DNA of 32,677 bases. Origin: Geosiphon pyriformis uo1 (Eukaryota > Fungi > Glomeromycota). Shown here piece after piece: positions 5,373 through 31,920 of the stretch. The notes beneath the pieces were generated by a model that was given only the letters and a program-made list of their open reading frames with translations, was not told where the DNA came from and ran no database searches. Where the stretch lies: assembly GCA_016748015.1 (NCBI GenBank), contig JAAOMT010000721.1, forward strand, positions 11,280-43,956, in the 5' to 3' direction. The position numbers were made by a program, and so were the translations under genes. Positions within the stretch are counted from its first letter, which is position 1. Every line of letters begins with the position of its first letter.

Positions 5373-6946
5373 TCAGCCTCCTCTATTCTTTGATTTCTTC
5401 ATCATATAGCCAAAGTAAGGGCCATTATGTGGTCCGATATCACTCGGAGGACGATTTTCATTTTTTAAAACCGGCTTGAATGTTGTATATTGAGCATTGC
5501 ATGACTTTGAACATTGAAAAAATGATAAATAATTATTATTAACTTTTGAAATATATTTTGCATTTATAAAACTAAATGTAAAATGAGAAAAAAGAAAAAC
5601 CTGATTTTCAAGGAATGTGTCGCCTACAGTGCATCGATATACTTCTGGAAAAAAGCTTAATGTACGTGGTTTTGATGAGAGACATTCGCATGATGCCTCT
5701 TTTTTTATCCAATATTCAGTTCTCAAATGACGATAACCAAACTTTGTCGATGGAAATGAAGTTCTTACATCATCGGAATGTGTCACACGATAAACGGTAA
5801 TTTTGGAATCAGCATAAATTGCTAAATTTTCATCTCCCATTCGTGGCTGTCCAAAGGTCACCACGACTGGTCGTTTAGCAAATATTCCATCTGCAAAAAG
5901 CGCGGACAAAACTGCAAAACCTATTTTGTATGCCAAAAAAAAACTCCTTTCATTGTTAGATTAATTATGAGAATACACTCATTAAATTCATTAAATAGAA
6001 AGATCCTCACCACCACCAATGTCAAATCCAATAAATCTAATTTTTGGCAAAATAGTCTCATTTGACAAGAAATTTTCTCCCCATTCCATTAATTTAGCAA
6101 AAAGATCTTGCACAAGAGATATTGTCCATTCTTTGTGATAAAAATGATCAATCATTCCAGCATTAGGGATGTGATTTGTGATCAATTTGTTTTGCCTCTT
6201 TTGCCAATTTTCTAACCTATCCACTGAGTTTTTAAAAACAACAATTATCTCAGCGGCTCGGTTTGTTGATGTTGACCTTATATAAAGAAACTGAACTAAT
6301 TTTTTTTATAAAGAGACCAGATTTTTAAAATTTTACAAAAAAGATTTTGTCAAAATTCAGAATTTCTTTGTTATTTACCCCAAATATTCCCCATCAATCG
6401 GGTGTGGTGACCATCTTTAACTCCAAAGTCTTCTAGATAAGATGCACTTCGAGCAAGAAATGAAAGTAAATTTAAGTTGGTAACTCGTTCTATTGTTTCA
6501 GGAATTTCTTCGGTAGCTTCTCTCTTTGGAATTTTTTTTTCTAGTTTCTTCCAAAAATTTTGAATTTCCGGTCTAGAGATATTATATTTGCAATGAAACT
6601 TGATTTCGGTAAATAAAGAAACATTGTTTGTTCTATTGTGATCGAGATTTCTTATTTGATTTGAAAAATTCGAAATATTTAAGCATTGATTCCTCTTGAA
6701 GTTTTTCTGGACAAAATAATTAATTTTTACAGTCGAGGTCAGGCTAAAGCAAAAAATAGTTAAATAAAAAAAGGCCAGAGCTAAAAATATCTTTGGATAT
6801 ATTGGCTTTTTAATCCAAAAGACTAAAAAAACAGGGGTTTTGAAATCTTGTGAAGGTGGCAATTTCAAGGTTTGTTTCAAAACATTTTGAATCATGTTAA
6901 ACCTAAGTATTCTCTTTGCATTAATACAGATGTATATAATACTCAT
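5373..6946 (-). CDS. Class-3 lipase-like protein, copy 1 (Ser->Asp, GFDIGG); 4 exons
   Basis: Exons 6946-6379, 6295-6011, 5920-5601 and 5504-5373 have GT..AG boundaries and a continuous frame. Motifs: N-terminal hydrophobic stretch, IIVVFKNS, GFDIGG, VVTFGQPRMGD, YRVTHSDD, EYWI, HNGPYFG. The start codon is uncertain (alternative ATG near 6895). Confidence 0.88.
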
Positions 6947-8019
6947 AAAATGAAATTGGACTCTGTTTAATTAATTTCCAAAATCATTTCTTTACTTTTC
7001 GGTTATCCATCTGATCTTTAGATTCAAAGCTGGAATTTAGTTATGTGGATCTGCTTGAACTTTTTGTTTGATCTTGGGTAATATTTAAATGATCTTTATT
7101 TGATTGAAAGATCATATTTTTGGGGTTTTGTCTATTAATGAGCCAATATTTTGAAAATACGAGCCCTTAGGATACCGTATTACTATGATGAATATTATTT
7201 TTAATTAGATTAGAATAAAGAAAATTTTTAAAATAAAATAAAATTATAAGAGAGAATGAGTTTGATAGTTTAGTTTTAAAAATAAAATTATAAACTGAAA
7301 TAATAAACTAAAAGGTCAATCTCAAGCAAAGTATATTCTCCATAACAGTATTCTTAACTCATATTACTCATTCGTTAAGCATCACAAAGCTTCTTATTTA
7401 TCATATAGCCATTTTTGATGGGAAAACTTGAATCTAAAGTCCACACTACGTTATAATTTCATCTTAAATATTTGTATATATTATATAATTTTTTTAATTG
7501 AGAAGTAGTAATTATGCTTTTTGAATTATATCTGGTAGCAAGTGCCCAAAAATAATTCATCTGCTTCAAAATACATGTCCAAAAAAGATATCAGTTCTTG
7601 AAAATCTTAATCTTGTTGAGCGATCGCAATTTCAAATTAAAAAATTTAGTAATTAAATTAAATCATATTTTGATATCAGTTGTGAGATTTAGGCAAAACT
7701 TAAGAATATATTCGCTTACACAATAAAGATTTCTCGGGGATACATAAATTAATTTAGGAACAATATTTATATCAAGATTTTAAATATGATGTGTGCATCT
7801 TTGTCAATTAAAAATATTATTCCAGATCAGTTATTATACTCTGATATCGCCGTAGCAGCAAGTGCTTTGCTAACCGTTTCATGATAGTAAGTTGTTCTGT
7901 AAATTAACATATATATTTTATTCTCCGTGTGAGCCTATCGATAAACGATAAAGGAAAATTGACAGAGAAAAAATTTCTTCTGACAGTAATCAAATGATTA
8001 GGCTTTGAAGAAAATTTAT

Positions 8020-8660
8020 TTTTAAAGGAGGAAAATATAAAACATTTATCTTGCCAGACTATCTTGAAATAAATACCTCCAATTGGTAAATTTACTGGAT
8101 TAAAAGGTGGGAGGAAACAAAGACCCAAGTGATCAAATTTGAAATAAAAAAAATTAATCTAGTCGTCACTGATATTCAACGGGAAATGAAAAAATAAGAT
8201 TAACCGTGTGAGTAAAGATATAGCTAAATTTCCAAACCTTTATTTTTAACGACAAACATTGAAAAAATTTACAATGGGCAAAAATCCAAAAATTTTGACT
8301 GGAATCAAGTTATGTTTTCAGATTTCACTTGAACCAATCAAGATTAAAAGTTTGGAAGTTTATTGAATGAAACACCACCCATTAATTAAAATTAATGTAT
8401 GGGAATTTTTTTTCAGCTTCAGGCTTTGGTAAACTAATTCGATTCTAACACATTCTAAATACTGATTTTGTAATTACAATATACAAACAAGATCTAGTTT
8501 TTAGGAACAATTCTATAAAGTGGATTTTGTAAAAAAAAATAATGATCTAAAATATTTTTCGAAAAAAGTGGCTCATTGGAAGGAGGAAAATGTTAATATT
8601 ATTTCATACCATCAATTCACCTTTCCAAAATTCGATTGAGAATAATAAAAATTAATGTAG
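8020..8660 (+). pseudogene. Tc1-family (DD34E-like) transposase pseudogene
   Basis: Ordered motifs interrupted by stops and frameshifts: YWIKRWEETK (HTH), LQWAK, DWNQVMFSD (8297-8323), KINVW..SASGFGKLI (from 8388), WIL*..NNDLKYFSKK (from 8521, cf. QxDNDPKH), WKEENV, and SPFQNSIEN (8617-8643, cf. SPDxNPIEN). Confidence 0.85.
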
Positions 8661-10603
8661 TGAAAAAAATTAAAACTCTTACAGGATTAAAAGTGCAATG
8701 AGCAAAAGAAGGGAATCTTTTGCCTAATGAGCTGCTGCAAATCTTGTTCCTAGTATAAAAAATTGAGTTAAGGAATTAATTAAAGTTAGTAGGATTAACA
8801 GTTCATCATCACTATAGACTGAAAGTCACAGCATACCGAAAATTAACCAAACAGTCCCACGATTGTAGACTAAGATTACTATAGACTAACAGTTACAGCT
8901 TTCATCCAAATCAATTAGACAATTAACAATTAAATGAATGACAGAACATGTTTATGTACTAGGTTAAAATTATTTTTTTTATTTAATTCTACCACAAAAG
9001 TAAATAACTATACTTATTAAACAATTTACACAGTTATAGAATGGATTATTAAAATTAATCATTGTAATATTTTTTGGTTGATTATTATAATTTTGCTTAT
9101 TTATAATATTAATTAATATATTTAGATTATTAATTTTATATTAAAATGTATTTTTTTTATAAAATTTTTATCTTATTTTTAATTGTTAATTTCAATTTCA
9201 AAATAGAATATATAAAAAATATGAAAATATACTCTATTTTTAATAATATATTTATAACAGCTGTATTATTTTAATAATCATTATAATTTATTTCTTAATC
9301 TTTAGATTTCTTTTAAAAAAAATTAGCAATTGTAATTTCAAGAATAATTACATTAATTAAATTAAATTTATATACTTTTTTTTTGTTATCATATTTTTCA
9401 AATTTATAACAATATTATTAATTAGTAAAAATTATAAAAGGCTAAAAACTGATCCACTTATTGCTACATAATTTGTACTACGAAAAATAATTCTCAAAAA
9501 AATGAACAGTAAAAAAATTTCTCAATGAATTTGGTATTTGTCTTTTCTCTTATTTGATCAATTGTAAACAAATATTTATTTAAAGACTTTAAAGCTATTT
9601 TTTTGTTAGTAAAATGTTTTTTTTAGATTTATATTCAGAAAAAATTTAAATAAATTTAACCAAAACATGGTTAATTCAAGTTTAGAATCACAAAAAATTA
9701 TAATTTTAGCATTTTTTGGTTATAAGAATTAATTTTTATAATATAATTTTAATAAGCAGTAAAATATTTTTTAAATTCTATATATAAAATTGCTTTTACA
9801 AATTTATAAGTTAAAACTAAAATATTTTAAATTACATCAATTTAAAAATTCTTTAATATTAACTCTTTTTAATAACAATTTCAGAAATTAACTTTCAAAA
9901 ATAGCTACCTATTAATTTTGAACATTCGTGAGTATGATTATCAATATCAAAATCTTGAAACTGATAGGGTTTGTTAGTTTACTAATTATTAATAAAATGA
10001 GAAATCAAAAATATAATAAAGGAGTAAAATAACATATTTTAAGAGTAATTGAAAAATTACAGAATAAAATCATTAAGGAATTAAATTTAAGCCAAAAGAA
10101 AGAAATGAATTATTTATAAGATGTTTCATATAAAACAAGAAAAAATTAGCACTAGTAAATTGATTCAGCAGTTAGTTAACTATTTTTTGTTTATAAAACT
10201 TTCCAAAACATTTGCAGTAAATGTTTTTTGATCAAAAACAAAATAAATAAGAAAAGAAATAAAATATTAATTTAATAAACATGTAGAAAAAAATGTTGGA
10301 TAGTATTTTGTATTTCAAATTCTCTCACTTTTGAAAATTAAATCACTTAAATTCAGCTTTATTTATCCTCTAGTCAGTTTTAATTGAACAAAATCGGTTT
10401 AATTTAATTCAAATTAAGCTAACAGTACCACCGAAATTGGCTTGACCAAATCTTTTGATCATATGAATCAAAGAAGTCGCATATATTTAATGTCAATCAC
10501 GATCTTTGAAATCTATTTAATATTACCCCAAAAATTATTGATGGATATAGCTTAAGATTTTTTTTTGAAATAATATATTTTACAGTTGATGGGGAAGCCT
10601 ATT

Positions 10604-12118
10604 CTATGAACAATCATTTATATTCACTCCAAAATATGGTCCAGAATGTATAAAATTCAATGGTACCTGATCGATTGATTGTCCAGCATTGCACTCCTTT
10701 ATTTATTTATTATTCGTATTAAAAAAATTCAAGATTAAAAAACCTCATTGGACAAAATCTTCAGAATAATCTACCAACCAGATTTTCTCCGGAAATCCCA
10801 GCGTTGGGGAATAATGATCTATCCGAAATTTCAATTTGTCGCCATGATCTAGAATTATAATCAAAACCTGGACATTCCCATATCTCTACTTCTCCCCCCT
10901 CCTCCTGAGGACAGTCACATGGTAACAGACTCATCCAAAATTCCAATTCGTGGTGTCCTAAAATATAATTTCCTGTTTCAGGATTAGGAAAATGTGGGAC
11001 GTGATCATTGGTATGTGTCACACGTTTAACGTCTAGCCATTGATTAATTAATTTGGCAAAAACTACGTTTCCGATTCGAGGAGCGCCGAACGTTACCGCT
11101 TCTACATCAAAATAAGAGAATTTGAAGCTGCTGATCAAGCTTTTTTCATCTTTTAAGTAAGATTCGATTTTCCATGTAAGAGCGGCAAATGTTGCATATG
11201 CTATTGGGGAATGTATAATAGAAAAATTTTCTAAATATTAATAAAATTTTGGAAATGATATTTTACACACTTACCACCACCTACACCCCATCCTGTGAAG
11301 CAAATTTTGGAAAATTCTTCTAACCCTCTTTCTTTGAGATTATGTTCAATATCATGAAAAAGAGAGGTTTTTATTGAAAGGAAATCATTTTGCCATTCCT
11401 GATCCACAAGAATTAATTGATTGGGCCTTAGGTCATTTATTTCAAACGTTACGAAATTTGGGCGTCGATTTGCCCATTCAAATTTCGTCAATGCTACCCC
11501 TAAAAAATTTTATATTAAGCTAATATATTTGGATGAGTCTTTTGATTTTGAAGATTTAAAAAAAAAAAAGAATTACCTGAGAAAGCAATAATTAATGCTC
11601 TTGAAAATTTTTCGTTTATCATATTAACTATATAAAATTGATCATGCTAAAGAGTTTCGAATATTAAATATCCACAAATTAAATATCTCTTCTGGTAAAT
11701 TATAATATATGGCACCTCTGATTTGATGTCTACTCAGCGGAGCATCTTTTTTGCAAAAACTACGGTTGCATAAAATAGCCATGTTAGCAGTTTCTGTAAT
11801 AAATTCTCCGTAATTGTCGTTATCCAATCGCTTTTTCGACGAATATTGAAATGAACGTGAGAGTATATCAGTTTCCCAGGTCGAATTAAATTTATCAGAG
11901 GTTGCATTTATTCTATGGAATGAACTTTTATTTGTTGATTCTAACCGCCAAGTATTAATCGTACCAGGCGAAAGCAACCTTGTGAATGTTGAAGAATGCA
12001 AGACATTATTAAAGATCCAAAAAAAAGCTACAAGTGCCCAGATAATAATACAGATTATCGAGTGAAAAAAAGGTTTGTAAGAGTGAAGGAAAAAAGCTAT
12101 AATCGAGATTTGTGCCAT
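10604..12118 (-). CDS. Class-3 lipase-like protein, copy 2 (Ser->Gly, GWGVGG); 5 exons
   Basis: ATG at 12118. Exons ~12118-11716, 11627-11577, 11499-11275, 11200-10779 and 10696-10604. Motifs: two N-terminal hydrophobic segments, ALIIAFSG, GWGVGGAYA, VTFGAPRIGN, RVTHTNDHVP, HHELEFW, ECNAG, HSGPYFG. The exon 1 donor is uncertain. Confidence 0.9.
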
Positions 12119-14135
12119 GAAAATTGCTGTGAGACTTTTCAAGCCGAAGTTCAATTATATTGCGTGAGGGATAAAAATTCCCTATGATGAAGTAATGATT
12201 GATAAATCAAAGACTTTCTCACGTTTTACTGATAGTGATATGATTATCATTTCACAATAAACCTTATCAAATTAATAAGCAATATCCAAAGCATTATTTG
12301 CTGTTATAATTTTCTTTTTGGGTTTTTGAAATTAAAAATACATTTTTCTACAAAAATGAAGAAGAAATAAGAAAATTTTCTTAAGGAATTCAGCATTTTG
12401 AATAGGATTCCATTATCGTCCGTCTTATATTATTAAATTTATTGATTATACAGTCATCTCATATACTTAGTTCTTTACGGAAATCATATTGAGCTCATTG
12501 AAAGCCCGAAGTGGGGAAAATATTCTTTAAAATATAATTTTATCATTTTAAAAAAGTAAAAATTTTTGTTACATTCATATTCAAACATTTATAATTAATA
12601 ATTTAATAAGCTACGAATGCAAAATAGTTTAACCAAATTTATAATTTTAGTTCATAAAAAATTGCATAAAAAATATGAATAATTAAAGCAAAAACTGTGA
12701 ATATTGAGCAAAATCTATTATTAAAAACAATATAAATATAAATTAATGTGAACTTTTGAATATTTAACTATTCAAAAATGATTGATACAAAAATATATGA
12801 GTTGACTACAAAATGTAGTTCAGGCTTTTGCATATAATTTCCAAAGTTTTTCAGAACTATCTTTAGTAAAAATAGACTAAAATTTTTTTGTAAATTTCAT
12901 TTTATAATTATTTTATTTAATTCGAGTCGAAAAATTACATTATAAAATTAATCTATAAAATTGTTATTTCAATTATACTATGTGTGAGCATACATAAAAA
13001 ATACTTTTTCATAAATTGTTGACCAAGTATTCTAATATCATGAGCTGTTAAACAATTCAAGTTATTAAAGATATATTGCCTTTTATCAAACACAAATAAT
13101 GAGAATTTACTTTTTTTAAACCAAATAATTTATTTTTAATATTTTCATATTCAATTTCAATATTTTGGGCTAGTTCAAAAAATGGATTTTTGTTTTTCCA
13201 TGTGAATAAATATTTCTTATAAATAAATGGGTATACTTTTGACAAAAATATTTGTTTCTTTCCCGTATTGAATAACATTTTATTAATATTTGCATAATTT
13301 TTAGTTTATGATTAAATCTTTTCAATATTTTCAGTATTTTTGAATATTTGTACAAACCGAAGATATTCTTACATTTTTTGACGGAGTAACTAGTCGATGC
13401 GAATATCCCTTTTCTACAAAGAGAAATGTATGCGAGAAAATTTTCGATTGAAATTCAAGGCATTCGCATATGTACATAGAGCATGATGAAAAAAAATTAG
13501 CGTATATACTCACCTTGATTAATCCAGAAATCTTGTTTGAAATTGGTTAAAAAAGAAACATCAACGTAAATTTAATTATTTAAATAATAATGATAATAAT
13601 AATAAATGGCATTACAACTACTATAATTCGAATTTTAAATTTCTAGTTATTAAATATTTATATTGAATATTAATTTTTATTACTAACGCTTTGCCATTGA
13701 AATTCTTTTTAAATGATATGTAAAACAGCTATACAATTCTTTTTCCCGTTTTAATATCATTTTATATATGCGTTCAAGAAATTAACATTATTACTAATAA
13801 AATGTGAAAAATAAAGCTATTAAAACTCTCAAAATGTTTCAACATAGATTTCTTACTATGAAGGCACTTGTAAAAAAGTTATTCGAATAATCTCAATTGT
13901 CTTTTTCTATCGAAAATTCAGGTCTGACCTCGTTAAATTTTTCATATTCTGAAGAAGCCTATTTATTTCTTGTATGTCTTGTTATTATAATACGACAGGG
14001 TGAAATCTGAGATAACAAGTAGTAAAACCTGCGATGATCAGCCATGTAATGTAAAACCTGCGATAGATAGGATAGATTGGGTAAAACCTGCGATAGATTA
14101 GTAAAAACCTGTAAACCCCGTGATTGTATCAAGTG

Positions 14136-15070
14136 AGAAAATGAAATATATAAAATGTGTAAAGAAGGTAAAGGTACATTATTTTTACTACCATAACATT
14201 ATCACTAATAGGCGATTATGCTTTGTCTACTAGCTCTTTTGAAACAAAAAAGGCCATTTGGCGCCCATTATTGCCAACTATTCGATGCATACAAGTGCCA
14301 CTTATACAAGTACCCTCAGTGTTAGACTTATATATGTTTGATACGGTATCCCTAGGAGGTGGTAGTCTTAGTAACGGCTATAAAATTCTAGATCATGACT
14401 GTATGCATAAGAAGTGGGTAAGAGATTATTATTTATATGAATTATAGTTCTATACAATAGTATTTTATTGAATATTAAGGTACGTGAAGGAGATGTAAAA
14501 GCCATTACACTTGTAAATGAAGATGCAAACAAAAATTCAAATTCAAAGTTGGCATACGTAGAATATCTTGGATGTTCCAATAGGGTATAAAATAAAGAAT
14601 AATTTCTAATCAAAATTAAAAAGTATTAACTTTATCTTTATTTATAGAATGGGTGATACCGTATCAAAAAGACAAATCGACCAGCGACTGCCTCTGATCC
14701 TTGTCATCAATGTTACGGGAATTAGCACCATTAATGAAAAGACGTCTCTTCAGAACAAAGATTTACCAGAAGAAATCAATTTTCCTAAAGGAAATCAAAT
14801 TACAAAACAAAGGTAAATTTGAATTAAGTTTATCACTTACTCTATTTATTTATTAATTTTTTAATATAGATATCGCCTGATGGGAGTTTCTTTTTGTAAC
14901 GACATCCATCATATTGCCGATGTTCGTTTCGAAAATTTTAAAAATTCTGGCTGGTATCAATACGATGGGTTGCAAAAAACCTACAAAGCAAGGGCAATGG
15001 CAATTGGAAGTCGCGTCCTCCTCCCAAAAGTGGTTATACAATGGATTTTGTCATCTATGGAAAGATTTGA
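14136..15070 (+). pseudogene. 5'-truncated multi-exon USP-like (papain-fold, C19-like) protease fragment inside the TIR element
   Basis: Introns at 14168-14211, 14418-14479, 14585-14647 and 14813-14869. The spliced product includes RLPLILVINV..LPEEINF..YRLMGVSFCNDIHHIADV..GWYQYDG..GYTMDFVIYGKI*, matching the order of USP C-terminal boxes. Two apparent 1-nt frameshifts (~14652, ~15012). Confidence 0.65.
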
Positions 15071-15081
15071 GTTTTTTGCAA

Positions 15082-15421
15082 TAAAAACTGATCGTTATAT
15101 GTAATAAAGAAGGATCTCTATTTTTAAGCTTACCTGTTTCAATAATAACAGTATTACTTGTTTGAATTTTCCATTCAAAGTTGTGTCACTTAGTTTGGTC
15201 AACTTTACAGCACTTTCAATTGGGTCTACTCTCAAAATGTGCCGTTGTTCTTAAAAACTGATTGCTATATGTAATAAAGAAGGACCTCTATTTTTAAGCT
15301 TACCTGTCTCAGTAATAACAGTATTACTCGTTTGAATTTTCCATTCAAAGTTGTGCCACTTAGTTTGGTCGACTTTACAGTACCTTCAATTGGGTCTGCC
15401 GTCAAAAGGGGTCGTTGTTCT
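15082..15421. repeat. Tandem duplication, 2 x 170 bp
   Basis: 15082-15251 and 15252-15421 align without gaps. My hand count gives about 16 differences, about 13 of them transitions. Confidence 0.95.
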
Positions 15422-15859
15422 TAAAAAATGTCTATTTATCGCAGATTTCACTTGATACAATCACGGGGTTTACATGTTTTTACCCTATTGCAGGTTTTAC
15501 TAATCTATCGCAGGTTTTACATTACATGGCTGATAATCGCAGGTTTTTACTATTTGTAATCTCAGATTTCACCCTGTCGTATTATAATTATGAATTTTTG
15601 AAATTGCAAAAGTTTTAAATTTTAGATTAATATACACGTATATAAACAGTAAAAGGAATTAGATTATAAATAGCTCAACTTGTCACAAACTGGGATTCTT
15701 AAAGATGTTTTATGAAGTATTACTTGCTAAACTGAATTTATTCGTTGGAAAACTTTATTCTCTCGAAAATTCAGAAAACCTATTAAAATGTTAAATTTAA
15801 ATTGTATTGAAAATTATAAATAAAATGACAATAAATGTCTCGTGAGAAAAATTTTGCTT

Positions 15860-17973
15860 TTAAATTTGGTCTTGAGAAATTTTGTTTGATAGCATAGTCT
15901 CAATACTGGGGTGTCTTGGAATGAAACGAACAAAATAGGGTTTAGGAAATTGGAATATAGACCCGGGAGAAGTACTCATGTCAATAGGAATAGATTTTCC
16001 ATTTGAATCTTGATTTGCATTTTCAATTTTGAAAGCTGAAAGTAGCATGCTTGAGATATAGAGTAGTTCGAGTTCAGCCTGTACAGAGTTTTTAACAAGA
16101 AAAAAAAATTAGATATTCATTCCAAAATCTCTAACTGACCATTGAAACTTACTAAATAAATTCCGGTACATGTTCTTCTTCCAACTGAAAATGTATAATG
16201 GTCTCGAGTTTTATAGGAACCTTTTGCCGAAATGGCAAAACTTTCTTTTGAACCCATAAATCGCTCTGGATTGAAAATATCGGGATTTTCGTATCGATTC
16301 TTGTCTGAGTTTAGAGCGTAAATATTCAAAACAATTCTTGAATTTTTTGGAATTTGATATCCCATATATGTATCATCTTGTTCAAGATATCTAAAGACGG
16401 TTCGGACCTAGAAAAAATAGAGGTATTATTTATTAATTTTTGAAAAAAGCACAGCATTAAGCAATATTAAAAGAATGTTTCAGAACTGCAGGAGCCCAAC
16501 GAAGAGTTTCTTTAATGATTGATTGTATATATGGAAGGGAACTAAAGTCGGAAGTTGTTGGTAAACGTTTATCTCCAACCACTCTGTCTAATTCTTCATG
16601 AGCCTTTAGTTGAAACTCTGGATTGTTGACCAAATTCGCAATGAGCCAATTTGTGCTATTTGCCACAGTTTCCTGTTAGATATATAAATAAAATAATCGT
16701 TAATGCACAATCGTTTTTTTCACAAAATAAATTAGATTAATATAAAAAAATGTAATTTTTAACGTACTGTTCCTGCCATTAAGAAAAGTTCACACATTTT
16801 AACCACATCTAATTCATCCATTAACCCTTCATCCTGCTTCGTCAAAAAATCTCGAGCAACACATGGCTTCTTTTCCGGATCATTTTTTACCCTTTTCAAC
16901 AAGTCTCGCGTTACTGTTTCCCATTCTTCACGTAATTTAAGAGTTTTTAAATATTCCTTTCGAAAGGGAGGAAATGAATATAGAAATGGATACAAATTTG
17001 CAAAAATTATTTTGATTGACACAAATGAAAAGGCTGTTTCAAAGAATTGGACTAGCTGTTTATAAAGGGGATCTTGTAAATTTTCAAATTTAATTCCAAA
17101 CATAAGATTTACAATAATATTAAATGATGTGAAACGGAGGTAATGAGAAGGATCGATTCCTTCTGATTTTTTAGTATCCTTTAAAATCATCAAGACTAGG
17201 TTGTGGGTGCATTCTGCTACAAGACTAGAGTAAGATTCGACTTTTCGTTGATTTAAAAACCCGTGTGCTTTTGAAGGTGAAAAGGGAAATTAAAAAAAAT
17301 AACTCTGAAAGATATTATTATTGAGGAGAAATAAAAGTAAAAAAAAAATTGCTTCCTAACCTAACGGCGTCATTTTTCTATACCATTCATTATAAGGTGA
17401 AGAAGCAAAACTCTTATTGCGGTCCAAAAGGTTACCCAAATAACGTTTTGGTTGCGAAGAATAAATCGCACCTCCTATTAATCGATAAAATGATTAATTT
17501 CGAAATAGTTTTAAACTTTGGATAAAAAAAAAAGAAGAGTTACGTTTTAAGAGAAGGTCGTCGACGGCTTGAGCCTTATTGAGGATAACCCAACGCATAG
17601 GGCCAAAATAAATCATGAATATGTCACCATACGTTTCCCTCCATTCAACAAATCTGTAAATAATAATTAATGTTTATTAACAAAATGAATGATTTCAACA
17701 TTTAATTCGAATAAATATGAAATTAAAAAATGACGCAAACTTTTCTGCCATATTATTTCTCAGCAAAAAAAAGTGTCCTAATCGAAATTTAAAAAAATAG
17801 TCAAAAATTTTCTATAAAGAAAAAAAACCAACCAAAAATTTTTTTTTACCAAAAAACGGAATTGCGCCTGGTGGCACAGGCAACTGCGTTCCATCATATT
17901 TTTTTGCTTTCGAAGATTTGATATTATAAAAGTAAAGTGCGAAAATTAAGGCGATAATGTATAATAAAGCCAT
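15860..17973 (-). CDS. Cytochrome P450 monooxygenase (fungal microsomal, CYP64-like); 8 exons
   Basis: Exons 17973-17850, 17777-17741, 17653-17544, 17474-17361, 17267-16768, 16672-16487, 16407-16153 and 16078-15860. Motifs: N-terminal anchor, PVPPG hinge, YGDIF, KRGAIYSS, I-helix AGTET, K-helix ETLR, FNPERF, and heme motif FSVGRRTCTG. Confidence 0.95.

Positions 17974-18501: not shown

Positions 18502-18503
<2 letters not shown>

Positions 18504-18534
<31 letters not shown>
18504..18534. repeat. (TAA)n microsatellite
   Basis: About 10 perfect TAA units. Confidence 0.9.

Positions 18535-18535
<1 letters not shown>

Positions 18536-19796: not shown

Positions 19797-19800
<4 letters not shown>

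Positions 19801-19830
<30 letters not shown>
19801..19830. repeat. (AT)15 microsatellite
   Basis: Perfect AT dinucleotide run. Confidence 0.95.
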
Positions 19831-19834
<4 letters not shown>

Positions 19835-20296
19835 TTATGAATTCATTATACATTAATATTTTAAAATTTTCTAATGAAAATATTTTTTGAACAGTTATTT
19901 ATCAATGACATTAAGAACATATTTTTATTTAAAAAGAAATAAATACAATCAATATTTATTTTAAATAAAAATAAAATGAAAAAAATAATATTCAAAAATC
20001 TTAAAATTAATTAATTTATTAATAAATAGAATTGAATAAATATTTTGATTTCAATTTTAAATGCATTAACGTTATCAAATAAGTAAAAAATAAATATTTA
20101 AAAGTAATTTTCAAGCCTTGTTTTAAAATAATTTTAAAAATAAAAAAAAAATTCAATATTTGTGCTATTAAAGAATCTTTCAAAATTTCTAAAGTTTAAA
20201 TTTAACTTTTTCCACATTCAAAATTTTAAAGGCAATATTATTTTTTTCATTTTATTTCGATTTTATCATAACTCGAACTAAATTTTTAAGAAAATT

Positions 20297-21617
20297 TTAA
20301 TTAGGGCAAAGACCCATATAATAACCAAAATAGGGTCCACTATGATAATGATTATCGGCCATATATTGGGGTACATTAACTTGTCTATGAAATTGGGCAT
20401 TGCAAAGCTGTTTTTTGTAAGAGTATAGATTAAACAATAAAATTTTAATAAAATACTTAATTTAAAATTTTTTGATTTGGAACAAAAAAAGCTAACCTTA
20501 TTCAAATCTTTAGTTCCTCGTTGCTCACACTTATATACCTCTGGGAAAGAACGTTTTGCAACTGGATCGTCAACAAAACATTCACATTGATTTTGTTGTG
20601 GTATCCAATATTCTGTTGAAAGAGGCCAATACTCTGGAACATTTAGCGGAAAACCGGGAACGTAGTCTTTACCATAGGTTACACGATAAAGTCTTACATT
20701 CAGATACACCTCATATGCAAAATAAAAATCGCCCATTTTTGGTTGCCCGAATGTAACGACAATTGGTTTTTGTTTATATTTTTTTGCATAAGCTAGACCG
20801 GCAAAGACAGCTTGAACTAGAAAAACAGAAATTTAAATTCTTAAGTATTTTCTATAATAAAAAAATTTTTTAAAATATTTGAACTTTTACCTCCTGCAAT
20901 TCCAAAGCCAGTAAATTCAAAATAACATTTTTTCCCGGGAATTCCCATTTTTGGATTTTGGCTATGAATATCATAAACTTTTTGCCAAAATGTTTTGAAT
21001 TTGTTTAAGTGTAATCTCAGCCAGACATCATGATACTCTTTATCAACTCCGGCAAACATATTACCCCGAAATGGAACTAATGTATGGATTTTGCCTTCAT
21101 AATGTTCCGGAGTGTTGAAATAAACAATTCGTGTTTCCGGCTCCTTTTTTTTTCGTTTCTCGGCTTTTATTACAAATTTTGCTATTTCAGAAAATCAAAA
21201 TGTGATTTCATCAATAATTGGACAATATTCGAGTCATCGATTTCTAAATACATATTGGGTACCATAAAGATCCGTCACAAATTTATCTTCTTTTGAATCT
21301 AAACATGCTGCATAATAAGCATAAAATGCATGTTGAGCGAGAAGAGCAAGCTCTTCTTCATCGGTCACACGAACTTTGAGATTTGTATCAAAATTTCTTG
21401 AATTTAACGCGTATGTTTTGTTAAATCTCTGTGTAAAGTTTTCATTAGAAATAAGGATTTTATTTCGTTCATGAAGATATTTTGGTTTTGATCTTGAAAA
21501 GTTTGAATCTGAAAAAAACCTAAAAGCCTCTCGAAACAAAAGCAAGTTCAGAAAAACGAGACAAAAAAAAAGTTTAAAACTTAATTTCTCGCTTTTAAAA
21601 AGTCTCAGAGTTTGCAT
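20297..21617 (-). CDS. Class-3 lipase-like protein, copy 3 (Ser->Gly, GFGIAG); 4 exons
   Basis: Exons 21617-21263, 21181-20891, 20816-20497 and 20407-20297. Motifs: hydrophobic N-terminus, helix EEELALLAQHAFYAYYAAC (cf. mature N-terminal helix of Rhizomucor lipase), FTGFGIAG, VVTFGQPKMGD, YRVTYGKDYVP, TEYWI, LCNAQF, HSGPYFGYYMGLC. Confidence 0.9.
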
Positions 21618-23079
21618 TGTTTTTTTTTTTTAAGTGGTTGAATACAATCAAATCAGTTACTAAATAACACGAGATGCGAACGCTTATTAAATATGGCATA
21701 ATCAAATAAATCTTTTGTTTATTATTTGGGGAACTCTTTCAAAAACGCTTGTAATCTTTGAATCTTTCAAATTAAAAGATTTTTCTCATGAAATACAAAA
21801 TGAATTCACAAGGCCTCCAAAGTTACAAAGATATTCGACATTTTTGGGATGAAATTTGGCATGAATTACTATATCAGATTAGCGGTTGTTTTTTTAATTA
21901 ATTACATGTAATTTTTCGTGGGAAATGGTAACGATCACTGTTTGTATGGAACAAAAAATGAAGAAATTGCTAGACTTTGACATCATTAATTAAAGATCGA
22001 GTCGATTGGACAAAAACATGACTTGATATTTCCGGTTAAAAAGGGGCTGGCTCTAGGCAAACATTGCAAAGGAACTTTTTTAGTTCAATCAGTAATTTTA
22101 ATTGGCCATATAATCTCATAATTAATATTTAAAAATAAAAAATAAAAATATTTGATATTAAAAACAAAAATATTCTTGGATTAATATGATGAGAACTTTA
22201 AACAATCAACGCGTGAAACTAAAAAATTTCTTGAAATTTTTTAGGAAAATAATACCAAAAAACATAAATCTGTTAAAGCTTTTTAAAATTCGATTTGTCA
22301 TCTTCTCTAACGAAATAAATTTTATAAAGTTTTTTCAATATTTTTTTTTCATCAAAAATCTATTATCGAAACTTTGTGGGATACAACGAAATAAACACAA
22401 AAGTACAATTTGATACCGTTTTAAAACAAAAAAAATTAATTCACGTCCAATTCAAATCGTCCCGGAAAAGAAATTTTTATGTTCATTAAGAAAAATAAAA
22501 ATAGAGTTGATCCCTGGCTAACTATTATTATTTAAAGGTTATTTGAAAATTTTTATTTAATACTTTGTTCAAAATAAAGTAATTTATGATTCTATGTTTA
22601 AAAGTAATTGAGTATGGAACATTTTTTGAATTTAAAATTATCAGCCTAGGCTTTTAGTTTATTTCAGAAGGTTTTGAGGCTTGTTAAAATATCTAAATAT
22701 TTATTTTAAAAGGCTAAGAACGTTGAGAATAAAGTGATACAATATAATCAAAATTTTATACATATTGATGTAAAAACAAAATCATATTATTATGATGAGT
22801 AAAAAAATTTATTATTTTAAAATTTGAACAAGATTTTAATTTTTATACATTGATTTATAAAATTGCATGACAGAAGCTAAAATAACTTAACTCATTTTTA
22901 TAATCTTTTTTGAAGTTAAATTAATTTTTAAATTTTATTTTGAATTGATTGAAAACAAATTGAGAAAAATGGTAAAATGAATTATAAATTTCAAAGTTTA
23001 ATTAACAAGTAAAATTAAAAAGATGTGTAAGAATATTAAAAACAAAAAATTCTTTCTCTTTCCTATTTTTTTAATAACT

Positions 23080-23760
23080 ATGGCCAAAGCAAAGAGTAAA
23101 AAAGAAACAATCACTTTTCTTATAATAATAATAATAGTATTACAACCAAGAAATCTTCTTGGTTGTAAAACCGACTAAAAAAGGTATTGTAGAAGCATTT
23201 TTTTAAGTATTTCTGATGCAAACAGTCTTCAACTATTTTAGAGCAATTTTTTGGTCTTTGGTTGAAACTTTTTTTTAATCAAAGTATTAAGATGAAAAAA
23301 ATAGAAAGAACCAAATAAGTCAAGTAAAACAAAACAAGATTAATTAAATTTCTTATTCCTATAACTAATGTTTATCTGCTTAAAAAACTAAATACAGATC
23401 TGGCCAGTCCCTTTTTTTATATTCAAATACTTCAAAATTTCTTACTAACTTGAATTGTAAGATGACTGGGATATTCTAAAATGGTCAAAAGATTTTGTGA
23501 TATTCCTTATGTTTGTAATTATTTTCTTCTTGAGTAATGTCTTCCAACTAGAACAGGTTTTTTAAAATACTATACATAGAACTTTTGAACCAATCTTAAT
23601 GCATTTACAACATTGTCTGTATGCTCTTAAGTGGTTTTCAATATAAGGTACTTTTTCTAAAAAAAACCGAATATTTAAGCTGCTTTTTAATCCTTCCAAA
23701 ATTCTAATTTTTTTTGATTTTAAAATAAGCAAAAATTATAGTAAACCAAAGAATTTACAA
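23080..23760 (+). mobile_element. Possible decayed non-LTR retrotransposon ORF1 relic
   Basis: Starts ATG GCC AAA GCA AAG AGT AAA AAA (MAKAKSKK) and continues with frameshifts into LVVKPTKKGIVEAF. From memory this resembles N-termini of repeat-derived (LINE ORF1-like) hypothetical proteins in Geosiphon. Unverified and heavily disrupted. Confidence 0.3.
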
Positions 23761-24791
23761 CACAAACCTTAAACTGAAAACAGATGTTATAAACTTTTTA
23801 AAACTGTAAAAAAAATATTAGTTTTTTGTTATATTCTTTTTTTTAAATTTGAATATCCAAAAATGAAAAATAAAATTTTTTTTTCTTATTTGTATATTAT
23901 TAAATAAATAATCAGAAAAGCCAAAGCAGCAAAAAAAAACTTTTTTCTCATGATTAATGCTGAAAATCTCTTTAAAATTAGCTTAATATAATTTTATTTA
24001 ACAGATTATTGTCAATTACAAAACAAAATAAATTATGTTTTAACATGTAATTTTTCTAATTATATTGTAAAATTACTTATTTTGAAAAGTTAAATTGCCA
24101 GTTTTTTATCTTAGAAATTCAAATCAAGATTTTTGATAATATAATAACTAATTTGTTCAAAGACTTTGTTAAACCATAAAAAATTTTGTTGTGTATACAT
24201 TTGATAATAATAAAATAAATATAAAAAAACCTCTGTATATAAAAATACATTTTAGAAAAAAATTGATTTTTGGAACCTGTTTGATTTTTTTATTAGACTT
24301 AATGCCAATAAAACTGCCTTTTAGATGAATAACATAGTTTTTAATAGCAGAATTTAAGTTACTTTATTTGTAAAATAAGTGCATTAGAATGGTTTTCCAG
24401 TTAGCATAATGTATTCTTAATATAAATTTGAAGAGCTGGTAATGTGTAGAAAATGCATAATTCACTTTAATAACATGCTAAAATGGTAGCTGCGAGTGTA
24501 ATTTATAAATTTTTTATTGTAATAAAACTTTCGATCAAGTAAAAATTTAAAAAGTATAATAGAAAAAATTTTATGGGTTTTCAACTAGAAGAAATCAATT
24601 TATTTTTCAATTGAAGAAATTAACAATTGACTAATGATTGGTAATATTAAATGATTTGGTTGTTGGAATATTATCTCAGGACGCGTAATAAATTTATAAT
24701 TATTTCTTTATTTTTTCTTATTATATGTAGTGAAAATTTCAAAAATTATATTTGTAAGATTCTAAGAAATGACTATTTTTTAATAAGGCTA

Positions 24792-26184
24792 CTAAGGTGA
24801 GTCAATCTCTTGTACGGGTTTTTCTTCTACCAGGCTCAAAAAGATCATTTCCAAAGTATCATAAGGGTTATTGTCACATTGTCCCATCTTGTAACCGAAA
24901 TATGGTCCAAAATGTATTCTATTGGGGACGAAACTATCTTTAACTTTTTTTAAAGACTTTGAATGAAATTGGGCATTGCATTTCTAAAATAAATAAAATA
25001 AAATGAGAATTAAGTTTTTTTAAAATGAAAATTCCTATACAATAACCAGCTAGCACCGACCGTGTTCAATTCTTTTGTACCCTTTTGTTCGCACATGTAA
25101 ACCTTAGGAAACTTTCCAATTGAAGGGTTACAATCACATGAGTTGTCATCTGGAATCCAAAATTCTGTTGGCAAAGGCCAATACTCATTATTTAAAGGAA
25201 AAGCGGGAACATTATCATCTGCATAGGTGACTCGATAAAGTTTTAATTGAGTGGACACAAGATCTGCAAATAGGCTGTTACTCATTTTTGGTTGGCCAAA
25301 AGTGACTACAACTGGAATCTTCCTGTATCTTTTCCCGTAAGATAGAGCCGCAAATATAGCAAAAACTTTGAAAATTTTTTTATAGCGAAATTTTTAAAAA
25401 AGTTAAAAATAAACGAGAAAATAATTCAAATAGATTTACCTCCACCTTCTCCAAATCCAGTAAACACAAAATAACAATGAGTTGACAATTTATAAAGAGG
25501 ATTCATTCTATGAAATTTTTCAAAGGTTGTTTGAACAAGTTTACGTGGGTTTCTTAGAGCGTTGGACCAGCGTGCATAGTGATCTTTATCAACTTTCATC
25601 CCTTTAGTACCGGGACCACCAGGATATTCTTCTAATATGACAGAGGGATTTTTTTTTATTTTACGTGCATCAAAAAAGAAGACGCGTGTTGGAGGTAGAT
25701 TTAGGGTGGGAGGGCTTAAAATAGTTATTATGCCCACTAAAATTTTATTTAAAAGACAGAATTTTTGAATAAATTGGCTGGATTTATTTTGAAGGAGAAA
25801 GATATTTTTCACCCCACCCCCCAAAAAAGAATTCTTACTGAATAAATTCCTTGAAATTTGATCTTCATTCTTAAGACAAGACCCTTTTTTGGAGATATAA
25901 GCCAAAAGAGAAAGAGTTTTCAATTCATTTTCATTCGTGATAAGAATCTTGGAAGGTGATTCTGATCTTTTGAAAAAAACTTTATGATTCTGGTCATGAC
26001 TAAAGCTTTTTAGGATCAATTGATCAAGATTAGAAGTTGCTAGTTTGAAAGAATTTTTTGGAATTATATCTGTTAAAAGAATAGATGGAATATTTTTTAC
26101 TAAAGATTTAATTTTCAATATGAGAAATAATATTGTTGTCAATATTATGAGTGATGAAAACACCAGTCTATACCAAAAATTCAT
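24792..26184 (-). CDS. Class-3 lipase-like protein, copy 4 (Ser->Gly, GFGEGG); 4 exons
   Basis: Exons 26184-25839, 25736-25440, 25365-25061 and 24983-24792. Motifs: signal/anchor LVFSSLIILTTILFLIL, NELKTLSLLAYISKKGSC, FTGFGEGG, VVTFGQPKMSN, YRVTYADDNVP, TEFWI, KCNAQF, HFGPYFGYKMGQC, then an acidic tail. Confidence 0.9.
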
Positions 26185-27103
26185 TATTTTTCAATAAAAT
26201 CTAACAGACTTTCAACTTTAGAAAGTTTCAAACATTTATTTATTTAATATTTACAATATAGATAATTTCAAAGAAGTGTGAATTTATAATTTTTTATTCT
26301 TATTCATTTTTTCATTAGGGGGAGCTATTAAAAAAAATTGTATATTTCAAATATTTCTTAAAACGTACGATTGAAAAAAAAATAAAAAACAAAGAGAATC
26401 TATAGCTCTACCCCCCTTTTTCACACCCCTTGTATGATAGATCTTCCGATCAGTTCTTGAGTTTTGATTTAATTGTTAGTTAGGAGTTTTTTGTTTGGCA
26501 CCATATGAAATAAAATTTCTTTAGGGATAAATGATATGATTGAATCTTTTTGGAAACAATGTCATTTTTTAATTTATATCTTTTACCAAATTATAACAGG
26601 ATTTGAAAATAACAAAAGGATTATAAAAAATACAAAAGAAGATAAAATATCATATTATTATTATAATTAGATAATATTAACAAATTTGCAAGCGATATTA
26701 ATCTAGGTCAAAAAAACAAAAATCCATCTTTGGGGTTAAATTCGGGAAAAATAATTTAAAAAAGATAAAAATCTTCAAGAAAAACAAACAAATAGAAAAA
26801 CCTGTGTTCTCAATGGGAAAATCTTCTTTCAGCCAGAAAGATAAAAAGAAGTGATAAGAGACATGAGAAATTATTTTTTCAGATTTTATTAATAAAATTA
26901 ATAAACACTATCAGAAAATGATTCTCGGACTAAAATAATTGGAGAAGCCAAAAACTTAATAAAACAAGACTAATTACAAGATTTTATTCTTTTCACCCCT
27001 TATTATTCTGGAAAATCGATAAGAATTATATTTTGTAATGTGAATTTACAGAAATTTATTATATAATTTTGTCATACTATTATTATATTAAATGAGCATA
27101 ATT

Positions 27104-27130
27104 CATAATGCATAATGCATAATGCATAAT
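27104..27130. repeat. (CATAATG)n heptamer repeat, ~4 units
   Basis: cataatgcataatgcataatgcataat. Confidence 0.85.
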
Positions 27131-28400
27131 TTTGATAATCAAAATAGTGTTTGAAAATATTTTTTGAAATCTATTGAATCAAAAAAAGAAGAATAAACTT
27201 CATTCTTAATTCTAATGTAAATTTTTTTCAAAATAAAAAAACAAATGGAAAAATCTTTTTTATTTCATATGAGTAATTCATAGTAATCTGTGGAAAAAAA
27301 AAATGAACGCTTAAACTAAAAAAAAAATTTATTCCTTTTTTGTTGAAACTAGAAATCCGAAATATACTTTAAGATTTCTTTGAAAGCAACCCGATAAGTT
27401 TAAAAACTTGTTTCGGAAACCAAAACATGCATAATGATATCAACGAATGCAATTCAGCAACGGATTTATATGAGCATAAATATTTTTTCTTAAATTTTTC
27501 AAACAAGCTCTTTTTAATCATATGATCACTTCCAAGGTCAAACTTTATTAATTTCATCTAATGAAACGCATAAGATTTGATGAAGCACTCAAAAACGTAT
27601 GTATGAGATGTATGTGCTAGCAAAAATTTATGTTTAAATAGTAAACAAAGCCCTCTGAAAGGGAGAGAGTGAGCTTTAAAGGACAAAGAAATGAAAATGA
27701 AAATTAAATTAAATTGTTCTTGTTAGTATCTTTTTTTTTTTTCATAATTATCTATTACCTTTTGATGGATTTTCATATTTTAAATAAATAACCCATATGA
27801 AATTACTCAAAAGATTCCCTTTTTTAAAAACAAAGAAATATCAAAACGTGGCCATGATCAAAAAATATTATACCAAGACAAGAATTTATGCACGAAATAA
27901 ATTGATTGAAAATTTTTGCCATGTTTTGATCGATGTTTCCCTCCGCGTTCCTACTATTTTAGGTAATGATCGGTGTTTGGAAACAAAAGCCTTTCCATTG
28001 ACATGCTAGCATGGAGTGCATTTACGCCCGGCTTTTTTCATGCATCACAGGATCAACTATTATCTTTTGAAAAATGGAAAAACATTCATCATCATCTGAA
28101 ATAGTTATATCATCTATCAGTGATTGACCTTATATTTCCAATTCTTGATTAGGAAGAGGCGTAAATAAAGCATGATGTAACCAAAATATCTTTAATATTC
28201 ACATGATTATGTTAGAAACAATTGATTTGATTCCTTTTGTCTATGGTTTTTGGTTTCTCAGAGCTGTTTATCATTCGGGAATCGAATGCGGCCATGCTAT
28301 TAGAAATTTGTGGATCATGGGAGATGGGAGTAGGAAATATATCGCCAACTATTTCGGTCAACCTAAAAGAAATTAAATATATATACATAATATCTTTGTC

Positions 28401-28431
<31 letters not shown>

Positions 28432-28477
28432 TAATTGAAAATACAAAAATTCCTTTTGACACAACAATTTAACTAAA

Positions 28478-28997
28478 ATGTCTTTGAAAACCGCATTGAT
28501 TGTCGGATTTGTGAGTACTGCTGGTGTAGTTGGTGGAATACATTATATTATTGAAAAAGTCAAGAAATCTGGCCGAAAGAACAAAATTGCCGCAGTGACG
28601 ACGACGAAAGAAGAGGTATGCAATAATAATAATAATAATAATAATGATATTAAGTTTTTATGAACAAAAAATGATAAAAATCCTTTTATATATTCAGACA
28701 CGAATATTCGAACCTAAACCACAGACATATCTCGAAAAACCAATCATCAACACCCCACTAAAACAAACGAAACCCGGAAAATCGGAAAAGTTGCCAAAAT
28801 CAAAAAATGAAAAGAAAAAATTTTCAAACGAAATTCCACAAAAACCATTCCCAGCAACTTTATATAAAAACAATCAACCTTGGTGGGAATCTAAATCAAA
28901 AAATGAAATTGAAGGTAAAGTTTCTGCGCAAAGGCAACCAAAAAAACCACATCGCGTTAACACCAACGAACGAATTGCGTGGCGCCTTGATTTATAA
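28478..28997 (+). CDS. Hypothetical 145-aa protein with N-terminal membrane anchor and Lys/Pro-rich tail; 2 exons
   Basis: Exon 1 is 28478-28615 (AAAATG context; ALIVGFVSTAGVVGGIHYII). A phase-0 intron GTATGC..TTCAG at 28616-28697 joins it in frame to exon 2, 28698-28997, which ends ERIAWRLDL*. Confidence 0.7.
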
Positions 28998-29471
28998 ATT
29001 CGATTTAATTTATCTCCTGACACATTAACCGAGCAGATATTAGATTTGAATTATTTTGGTTTTTTGAGAAAAATTTGTAGATATTTCATGAACATTTTTC
29101 AAAGATCGAAAGTGGTTTAAAACGGTTTTTCATTTTGTAATAATATTTTGGTAAAACAATTGTTCACTTTTCCTACATATTTTTGTATATAATTTCAAAG
29201 TGTTGGTTAGCTAAAGTATCTTGAAATGAAAAAATAGATTTCCTGTATAAAAATGATGTATTTTCTGAAAAAAAAAATTTTATAGAAAAATTTTTCCAAG
29301 TTGAATTTGAAAATTGAGGTTTTTTAAAACATTGATTACTTTGAATATTTTTTTTAAATTAACAGTTTCTAAAATCAATTTCTATTTTTTCCTAACCATA
29401 TTTAAAAACCCTTCCGAATTTGATTTTTTGGATGTATTTGATAATCTTAGTGAAATGGGGTTCATTAGATT

Positions 29472-30873
29472 TTAATTGATATCTGGACATTTTCCCATTA
29501 AATAACCAAAATATGGGCCAATGTGAACTTTTTCCCGATCTTTCATTTCTTTAAAATTTCTTGGTACTTGACTAATAAATCGTCCACTGCACCTCTTTGT
29601 GAAAACAAATAATTATTAATTGTTTATCATTTAAAAAATTTTAAATTTTTAAATAATAAATAAAGAATTTACCTTATTAAGATCTTGATAGAATGACTGA
29701 TAGCATTTATAAACTTTAGTTTCTTTGCAATCACAATCATCTTCCATTATCCAATATTCAGTCTTTAATGGATAAAACTCTTGAGTATCACTATTCTTGG
29801 GTAAGAATGGAATAATATCATTTTTATAGGTGACTCTGTATGAATTGACTCTTTCTGCCGTATAAATCGCAAAATATTTGTTTCCAATTCGTGGAAGACC
29901 AAATGTCACTACAGTTGGTCGTATTTTAAAGCGAGCTTCAAATGCCAATGCTGCAAATACTGCGTAAACTGATGGAGAAAATTATGTATTCAAAATAAAC
30001 TCTTTTTTTTTTTTTTTTTTAGAAAAATTCCTATGCTCCGAAAAATTAAATATTCACTCACCACCACCAATGCTAAACCCAACAAAAACAAATTTAGGCA
30101 TTTGCCGCTTAAGATCATTCCCAGCAACTGAGGGTGATGATGATAATAATCCAAGACCTCGTTCAAAAACAGGCAAAAAAAGTTGCCAAAATTTTTGTCT
30201 GCCCGTATTCCATTTTTTTAAGAATATACTATCTACTAAAAGGTCAGGCCAGTTTCGCCAACTGACTAGAATACTTTTCCTTAATTCCCATCCATTTAAA
30301 AAAATTTCTGTGGCTTTAAAATAAGAATAAATTCTAGTTGTTTTATGTTCTGATAATGCTTCTATTTGACCCATTGTAGTTGAGTGTACTTCTGGCTGGT
30401 ATATTTCAACGTTAGCTTGAATTTTAAAATATTTTAAACCTTTAGAATTTTACTTTTCAAATTTACTCATTTCAATTATATGCGTTACCATAGAGATGAA
30501 TCGTTAATCGTTCCGTTCTTTCCAAACAAGCGGCTTTGAATGCGTAAGATGCTGCTGTTTTCAAAATTTCTAATTCCGCTGGTTTGGTAACTAAAAGTTT
30601 AGACCCTTGTTCTCTTTTTAATATACGAGTAGCTTGTGAAATAAAAGAATTTTTTGAATAATTTCTTTGAAATTCATAAAGTGATTTCACCCTAAAACTG
30701 TTTTCCAAATAGTTTCCTACAGATGAATTGATTTCAATATTTGAAAAAAATTTTTCACTCTGTTCATATGATAAAAATGTTTTACAGAGTGAAATTATAT
30801 GAAAAAAAATCAACGCTATTGAGAAAAAAATGAAAGGAGTGGTAAAAGCTCTTGAAAGTTGAAATAGTAGCAT
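29472..30873 (-). CDS. Class-3 lipase, copy 5 (intact triad: GFSIGG, D, H); 4 exons
   Basis: Exons 30873-30489, 30439-30062, 29968-29673 and 29594-29472. Motifs: hydrophobic N-terminus, AELEILKTAASYAFKAAC, YFKAT, GFSIGGVYA, VVTFGLPRIGN, YRVTYKNDIIP, TEYWI, HIGPYFGYLMGKC. Confidence 0.92.

Positions 30874-31299: not shown

Positions 31300-31301
<2 letters not shown>

Positions 31302-31381
<80 letters not shown>
31302..31381. repeat. (ATT)n microsatellite
   Basis: About 26 perfect ATT units; this explains the poly-Leu ORF. Confidence 0.95.
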
Positions 31382-31870: not shown

Positions 31871-31873
<3 letters not shown>

Positions 31874-31915
<42 letters not shown>

Positions 31916-31920
31916 TAATA
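31874..31920. repeat. (AAT)n microsatellite
   Basis: Long, near-perfect AAT run. Confidence 0.9.

Follow-up and report, generated by a model that had tools for sequence, protein, structure and literature searches.

Serine-less class-3 lipase-fold genes of Geosiphon pyriformis as candidates for a secreted family of binding proteins

Comparison with lipases and with non-catalytic lipase-like proteins

The Ser residue at the nucleophile elbow of lipases is required for the formation of an acyl-enzyme. Neuroligins and NDRG proteins are non-catalytic alpha/beta-hydrolases that act by binding (PMC13404110, PMC7022630). The scabies mite inactivated protease paralogues (SMIPPs) form a multigene family of secreted inactivated proteases in a partner-dependent organism (PMC4031079, PMC5956821). 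EDS1, PAD4 and SAG101 are proteins of non-catalytic use that have a class-3 lipase fold. Here, we describe five class-3 lipase-fold genes (copies 1-5), four of which lack this Ser residue, in a stretch of 32,677 nucleotides (the window) from Geosiphon pyriformis uo1 (contig JAAOMT010000721.1, positions 11,280 to 43,956). Geosiphon is a fungus of the Glomeromycota that houses the cyanobacterium Nostoc inside its cells. The five genes were located on the minus strand by six-frame motif scans and exon reading. An earlier note on this DNA had described five co-oriented class-3 lipase genes, and their orientation, their elbow sequences and the places of the RVT[HY]xxD and HxGPYFG motifs are all confirmed.

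The five copies resemble fungal class-3 lipases (PF01764), such as Rhizomucor miehei lipase, the Rhizopus lipase 6a0w and Aspergillus FaeA, in fold (root-mean-square deviation of ~2.5 Å over ~235 residues), in the triad Asp and His, in the disulfide bond between the N- and C-terminal regions and in the prepro architecture. They differ from these enzymes in that the nucleophile is replaced by Gly or Asp in four of five copies, the elbow His is replaced by Phe or Trp, and the oxyanion Ser/Thr is mostly lost. In addition, the Geosiphon family contains a CxC insert and has a copy number in the hundreds. Full-length searches and fold comparisons were made via database proteins, P0001 for copy 4 and P0034 for residues 88-385 of copy 5. 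The AlphaFold models of copies 4 and 5 (predicted local distance difference test scores of 90.6 and 90.4) match the Rhizopus and Rhizomucor lipases and FaeA at Z scores of about 24-27, with values of 25.2 and 27.5 against 6a0w. The lid region of the copy 4 model contains no helix.

Like neuroligins and NDRG proteins, four of the copies keep the scaffold and have lost the nucleophile, the use of this scaffold for recognition being known for neuroligins and NDRG proteins. However, those proteins belong to the cholinesterase or other clans and occur in few copies in animals, whereas the proteins described here are class-3 lipase folds that have undergone a mass expansion in a fungus. EDS1, PAD4 and SAG101 match the models of the copies at Z scores of 17-19, and their non-catalytic use would be shared by the Geosiphon proteins. 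They are intracellular, few and fused to an EP domain, whereas the Geosiphon proteins look secreted, with hydrophobic N-termini, and end ~10-40 residues after the His loop, without an EP domain. SMIPPs are protease folds of a parasite with known host targets, whereas the Geosiphon family is a lipase fold of a mutualist with one shared Ser to Gly loss. Pseudoenzyme expansions are a known kind of system, and the Geosiphon genes add to it a distinct subclade, splicing of copy 4, a Ser residue that was probably regained (copy 5) and a Lys-Arg (KR) processing signal before the domain, which are described below. A Ser-less lipase family, or a class-3 expansion this large in one fungus, was not found in the literature searched, which did not cover the Geosiphon genome paper.

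Nucleophile site in the five copies and in the family

The nucleophile site is occupied by Asp in copy 1 (GFDIGG, 6029-6012; codon GAC at 6023-6021) and by Gly in copy 2 (GWGVGG, 11293-11276; GGT at 11287-11285), copy 3 (GFGIAG, 20909-20892; GGA at 20903-20901) and copy 4 (GFGEGG, 25458-25441; GGA at 25452-25450). Only copy 5 (GFSIGG, 30080-30063; AGC at 30074-30072) has the Ser residue of the GxSxG motif. Alignment indicates that the triad Asp and His are present in all five copies. The oxyanion motifs of copies 1-5 are FKNS, FSGV, FNTP, FDAR and FKAT, respectively; the Ser/Thr residue is kept by copy 1 (Ser) and copy 5 (Thr) and is absent from copies 2-4. The single Ser, the retained Asp and His and the altered oxyanion motifs had all been described in the earlier note, and these descriptions hold, with the refinement that the residue of copy 1 is Asp and not Gly. 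The same note had given the elbow His as Phe or Trp in all five copies. This is correct for the window, but most of the family keeps the His residue (128 of 173 domains), and its replacement by Phe marks the subclade that contains copies 1, 3, 4 and 5.

A search with a profile built from the post-elbow exons of all five copies gives 281 representatives at E<=1e-10, 150 of them listed. Altogether, 173 family domains were extracted, such that the family contains at least ~170 domains. The elbow census that the earlier note had proposed, run on these sampled domains, reveals a genome-wide family in which Gly predominates at the nucleophile site (Gly in 141, Ser in 12, Ala in 9 and Asp in 4). The oxyanion Ser/Thr is present in 12 of 147 family members, as compared to 43 of 54 canonical lipases. 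The triad Asp is present in 167 of 173 domains, and the His in 122 of 143 aligned. All four Gly codons are in use. The persistence of Gly at the nucleophile site in an AT-rich genome would be expected because Gly suits the strained conformation of the elbow. As the Ser residue is missing and most copies have also lost the oxyanion Ser/Thr, the cleft would be unable to form an acyl-enzyme, and these copies are predicted to be inactive as lipases.

The family is so far seen only in Geosiphon. All 65 family-type proteins with a readable source are from this fungus, and matches from other organisms have Ser without exception (67 of 67 in one search and 4 of 4 in another). Family members from Ambispora or other arbuscular mycorrhizal (AM) fungi were not found in the databases searched, although these searches were not exhaustive. 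A metagenome scan gives five weak matches, the two inspected of which are canonical plant-type Ser lipases, and the ESM Atlas gives generic Lipase_3 clusters only. Elsewhere in the Geosiphon genome a canonical lipase is encoded (G9A89_002345, with GHSLGG and FKGT motifs), which groups with a Mucorales enzyme. The sequences suggest that the five genes belong to an old expansion of Rhizomucor-type class-3 lipases, the ancestor of which probably exchanged Ser for Gly. As side observations, many NCBI models (P0029, P0057, P0036 etc.) are multi-domain 'lipases' of 550-1290 residues in which neighbouring genes appear to have been fused, and the N-terminal exon part is missing from many single Geosiphon lipase models, so that counts and secretion predictions based on this annotation are unreliable.

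To place the copies within the family, trees were built with the elbow His and nucleophile columns removed; supports are Shimodaira-Hasegawa-like approximate likelihood ratio values (SH-aLRT) from quick trees. Copies 1, 3, 4 and 5 fall into a 30-member 'GF' clade (SH-aLRT 99) of 26 Gly, 3 Ser and 1 Asp members, in which copy 3 is the sister of copy 4. This clade is itself nested inside clades dominated by Gly copies. The 'GW' clade, which contains copy 2, is distant from it. Parsimony requires 12 changes if changes are free but 41 separate losses if Ser is never regained. Forcing copy 5 out to the canonical Ser lipases costs 32 log-likelihood units (approximately unbiased test, p=0.037), which is moderate support, as the test was framed after the first tree had been seen. 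The residues at the nucleophile site of the nested clade (G135 A9 S9 D4) vary like those at the neighbouring structural Gly sites (G141 A11 S6 and G142 A13 S4), suggesting that Ser copies are about as frequent as drift at a tight Gly site gives. Thus, the Ser residue of copy 5 was probably regained by one Gly to Ser step and is not ancestral. The AGC codon of copy 5 is one transition from Gly, and nested Ser copies use AGY codons, but codons alone do not decide the origin of Ser, because basal Ser copies also use AGT. The only clear codon case of regain is P0130 (L010:11197), in which Ser (TCA) would have arisen via Ala; it stands amid sisters with an Ala elbow, encoded by GCA in the one neighbouring gene checked. 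With a nonsynonymous to synonymous rate ratio (dN/dS) of 0.80, P0130 is possibly under relaxed selection. Among the nested Ser copies, a clean oxyanion Thr (FKAT) is found in copy 5 alone. This copy, with its Ser, Thr, Asp and His residues, may therefore have regained hydrolytic activity, the chances of which we put close to even.

These results bear on two alternatives. According to the first, which we consider improbable, the Gly copies are enzymes of altered chemistry, in which the His-Asp dyad activates water or substrate for a lyase, transfer or slow hydrolysis reaction, and Asp copies such as copy 1 use Asp as the nucleophile like epoxide hydrolases. Dyad-only chemistry exists among alpha/beta-hydrolases, the Asp is nearly invariant (as counted above) with His in about 87% of aligned members, and Asp elbows have arisen four times independently. 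However, the oxyanion loop is degenerate and variable, His is replaced by Asn, Arg or Tyr in about 11%, and the spectrum of residues at the nucleophile site mirrors the flanking Gly sites, which suggests a steric rather than a chemical constraint. Hundreds of divergent copies for one slow reaction are also hard to explain. Copy 1 has the elbow Asp of Asp-nucleophile hydrolases, but its oxyanion loop is FKNS instead of HGxP, and it groups with the Gly copies of the lipase family.

According to the second alternative, which is quite improbable in our estimation, the array is a local module in which the Ser-less copies regulate or shield the neighbouring active lipase, copy 5. The earlier note had raised this possibility, with copy 5 as the one intact lipase. 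In its favour, the set of Ser, Thr, Asp and His is complete in copy 5, and one run contains transcripts of both copy 4 and copy 5, as described below. On the other hand, it is nested deep among Gly copies, copy 2 comes from another subclade, Gly copies outnumber Ser copies by about 12:1, and many of the fetched loci are without a second Ser gene. The frequency of Ser, about that at neighbouring Gly sites, and the separate canonical lipase G9A89_002345 likewise lend this proposal little support. The array is a mixed sample of a genome-wide family and not a local system.

Gene models, maintenance and secretory architecture

The five genes encode open frames of 434, 397, 358, 379 and 385 residues, share intron positions and phases, have GT-AG intron ends and are 25-37% identical to one another. 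Copy 1 (5373..6946) consists of exons 6946-6379, 6295-6011, 5920-5601 and 5504-5373, and its second Met may be an alternative start, as in the NCBI model. Copy 2 (10604..12118) consists of exons 12118-11716, 11627-11577, 11499-11275, 11200-10779 and 10696-10604. Copy 3 (20297..21617) consists of exons 21617-21263, 21181-20891, 20816-20497 and 20407-20297. Copy 4 (24792..26184) consists of exons 26184-25839, 25736-25440, 25365-25061 and 24983-24792, and its model is identical to the NCBI protein G9A89_003419. Copy 5 (29472..30873) consists of exons 30873-30489, 30415-30062, 29968-29673 and 29594-29472. For copies 1-3 and 5, the NCBI models are cut short, or leave out parts, at the N-terminus. 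The post-elbow exon of all five copies scores above the Pfam Lipase_3 cut-off (28.7-40.1 bits as compared to 22), and an open frame of 350 codons has a chance probability of ~1e-12 at the stop frequency of the window. No further lipase fragments were found in the window beyond the five copies. Two introns, the last one of copy 1 (5505-5600, 96 nt) and the first one of copy 4 (25737-25838, 102 nt), are in frame and free of stop codons, such that retention of either would give a longer protein; the latter is spliced out in run X2.

Two sequencing runs, X1, which is DNA, and X2, which is catalogued only as 'DNA?', were compared with these models. Contigs of X2 skip exactly the three predicted introns of copy 4 (24983/25061, 25365/25440 and 25736/25839) and two introns of copy 5 (29968/30062 and 30415/30489), without letter differences. 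None of these copy 4 and copy 5 joints is present in X1. X2 was read as RNA, because full-identity retrocopies of three separate genes are unlikely. X2 behaves as a Geosiphon transcriptome in spite of its catalogue entry; the depth of its contigs cannot rank expression. In a pairwise codon model, comparison of copy 2 with G9A89_008571, which is the paralogue nearest to it and shares 63% identity over 270 codons, gives a dN/dS of 0.30 at a dS of 0.84 (likelihood ratio test against neutrality, p=2e-9); pairs within the window are saturated and were not interpreted. The marks of a maintained pseudoenzyme, expression and purifying selection, are thus both found, but on different copies, splicing for copy 4 and dN/dS for copy 2.

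Each copy has an N-terminal hydrophobic segment (best 19-residue Kyte-Doolittle mean of 1.7-2.5) and a variable stem behind it. In four of the five, KR stands directly before the domain. The exception is copy 3, and the site of copy 1 is KR-EA. The gene models and hydropathy values bear out the open frames, splice sites and hydrophobic N-termini described previously. In 94 family members, the stretch before the domain contains 57 instances of KR, as compared to 27.3+/-4.6 in shuffled sequences (0 of 1000 shuffles reached 57), whereas RK occurs 26 times as compared to 27.5 expected. RR and KK are also at expectation, and the mature domains show no KR excess. Enrichment of KR before the domain is a signature of Kex2-type processing, as in fungal prepro-lipases. 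The KR excess points to the release of a soluble domain within the secretory pathway. For copies 1 and 2, the N-terminus is more reminiscent of a signal anchor. Copy 1 combines such an anchor with a stem rich in N-glycosylation sites and has lost both Cys residues of the N/C-terminal disulfide. The Cys residue after the first helix is missing in eight family copies, including copy 1, and the C-terminal Cys is missing in all eight of them. This co-loss indicates paired loss of a disulfide, as expected for folded extracellular proteins.

It is extremely improbable, and for this window largely refuted, that the copies are duplicates in decay or have arisen as artefacts of the assembly or annotation. 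Another family pair elsewhere has a dN/dS of 0.80, which is not different from 1, and the genome is repeat-rich, with a transposon inside the array. Nevertheless, open frames are kept at 25-37% identity in DNA of 25% GC, transcripts are spliced without letter differences, dN/dS is 0.30 for the copy 2 pair, Cys residues are lost in pairs and all four Gly codons are used. Decay was rejected on the basis of splicing, dN/dS and paired Cys loss. The earlier note had proposed maintained pseudoenzymes that are secreted or exposed at the surface, and had named lack of transcription together with a dN/dS near 1 as the signs of decay; the opposite of both is observed, and the proposal is supported by these results together with the intact fold and the KR pro-sites.

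Other features lie between the copies. A cytochrome P450 gene (15860-17900) stands between copies 2 and 3 on the minus strand, in the orientation of the lipase-like genes; its NCBI model has 514 residues, matches Pfam p450 and contains an intact heme motif, FSVGRRTCTG. A two-exon gene on the plus strand between copies 4 and 5 (28478-28997, intron 28614-28695) encodes 145 residues with a hydrophobic N-terminus and a basic tail, is spliced in X2 and has no Pfam match. The transposon-like insert (13985-15587) contains a tandem direct repeat of 170 nt (15082-15421, 91% identical) and an NCBI-called plus-strand gene of 230 residues, and has two open reading frame pieces without Pfam match. Upstream of copy 5, (TTA)n and (AAT)n microsatellites (31294-31380 and 31873-31937) form an inverted pair ~500 nt apart in a stretch of 7-16% GC and are probably ordinary low-complexity DNA.

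Possible functions and their meaning for Geosiphon

Across the family the scaffold, the disulfides and the cleft-lining motifs (D.VPxFP and HxGPY), together with a lid Trp, are conserved. High variability is seen in the oxyanion loop, the stem and the surface loops. The residue following the catalytic Asp is aromatic (Tyr, Phe, His or Trp) in 119 of 161 members. Given this pattern, a diversified binding repertoire is the best reading of the family. Each product would consist of a hydrophobic segment that serves as signal or anchor, a pro-region that varies and in most cases has a KR site of the Kex2 type, and a lipase fold with disulfide bonds. These proteins would act in binding, in secreted form or at the surface, with specificities that have diversified among the copies. 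Their likeliest ligands would be acyl lipids or glycolipids of Nostoc or other microbes at the hyphal or symbiosome surface, which the proteins would capture, carry or sense. We hold with moderate confidence that the family is a repertoire of diversified extracellular proteins that bind lipids or glycolipids, probably at the Nostoc interface. The lipid ligand and the symbiotic role are speculative parts of this proposal, the link to Nostoc resting only on taxonomic restriction and host biology.

Several observations weigh against such a repertoire. Some family copies drift, as seen for the pair with a dN/dS of 0.80. RNA supports two copies only, from one run of unrecorded type and without tissue specificity, and only one unsaturated dN/dS pair includes a copy of the window. 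The retained Asp and His could also mean that catalysis proceeds by a different route. Other AM fungi are also without fatty acid synthase (FAS), yet no such family is found for them in the databases searched.

The evidence for maintenance and secretion also fits a different kind of binding, in which the non-catalytic proteins recognize proteins or wall polymers and not lipids, and serve in adhesion or as effectors or decoys toward Nostoc, endobacteria or competitors, like neuroligins and the SMIPPs. Four of five copies are strongly basic (net charge of +15 to +23), the copy 4 model is without a lid helix, and the surface loops diverge to an extreme degree, as would suit a repertoire of receptors or effectors. 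We judge this alternative rather unlikely, as the cleft motifs and the lid Trp are conserved and the consistently aromatic residue that follows the catalytic Asp is in keeping with the retention of a pocket for small ligands.

The proposal of a lipid-binding repertoire gains its biological context from the host. FAS homologues were undetected in every Glomeromycota genome analysed, including that of Geosiphon (PMC11134847). A digestive lipase may have given rise to several hundred secreted, Kex2-processed recognition or carrier proteins that serve a fatty-acid-auxotrophic fungus by helping it to select, house or draw lipids from its cyanobacterium, with hydrolysis re-emerging later, for example in copy 5; this fuller scenario is possible but tentative. 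Annotation based on Pfam domains would count these Ser-less genes as working lipases, and X2 is usable for a splice census of the whole family. As a pseudoenzyme expansion the family would be unusually large, and it would offer a natural experiment on how a catalytic Ser is lost and possibly regained. Geosiphon recognizes Nostoc and obtains fatty acids without a synthase of its own, and this family of lipase-fold pseudoenzymes is a concrete candidate for a part in both.

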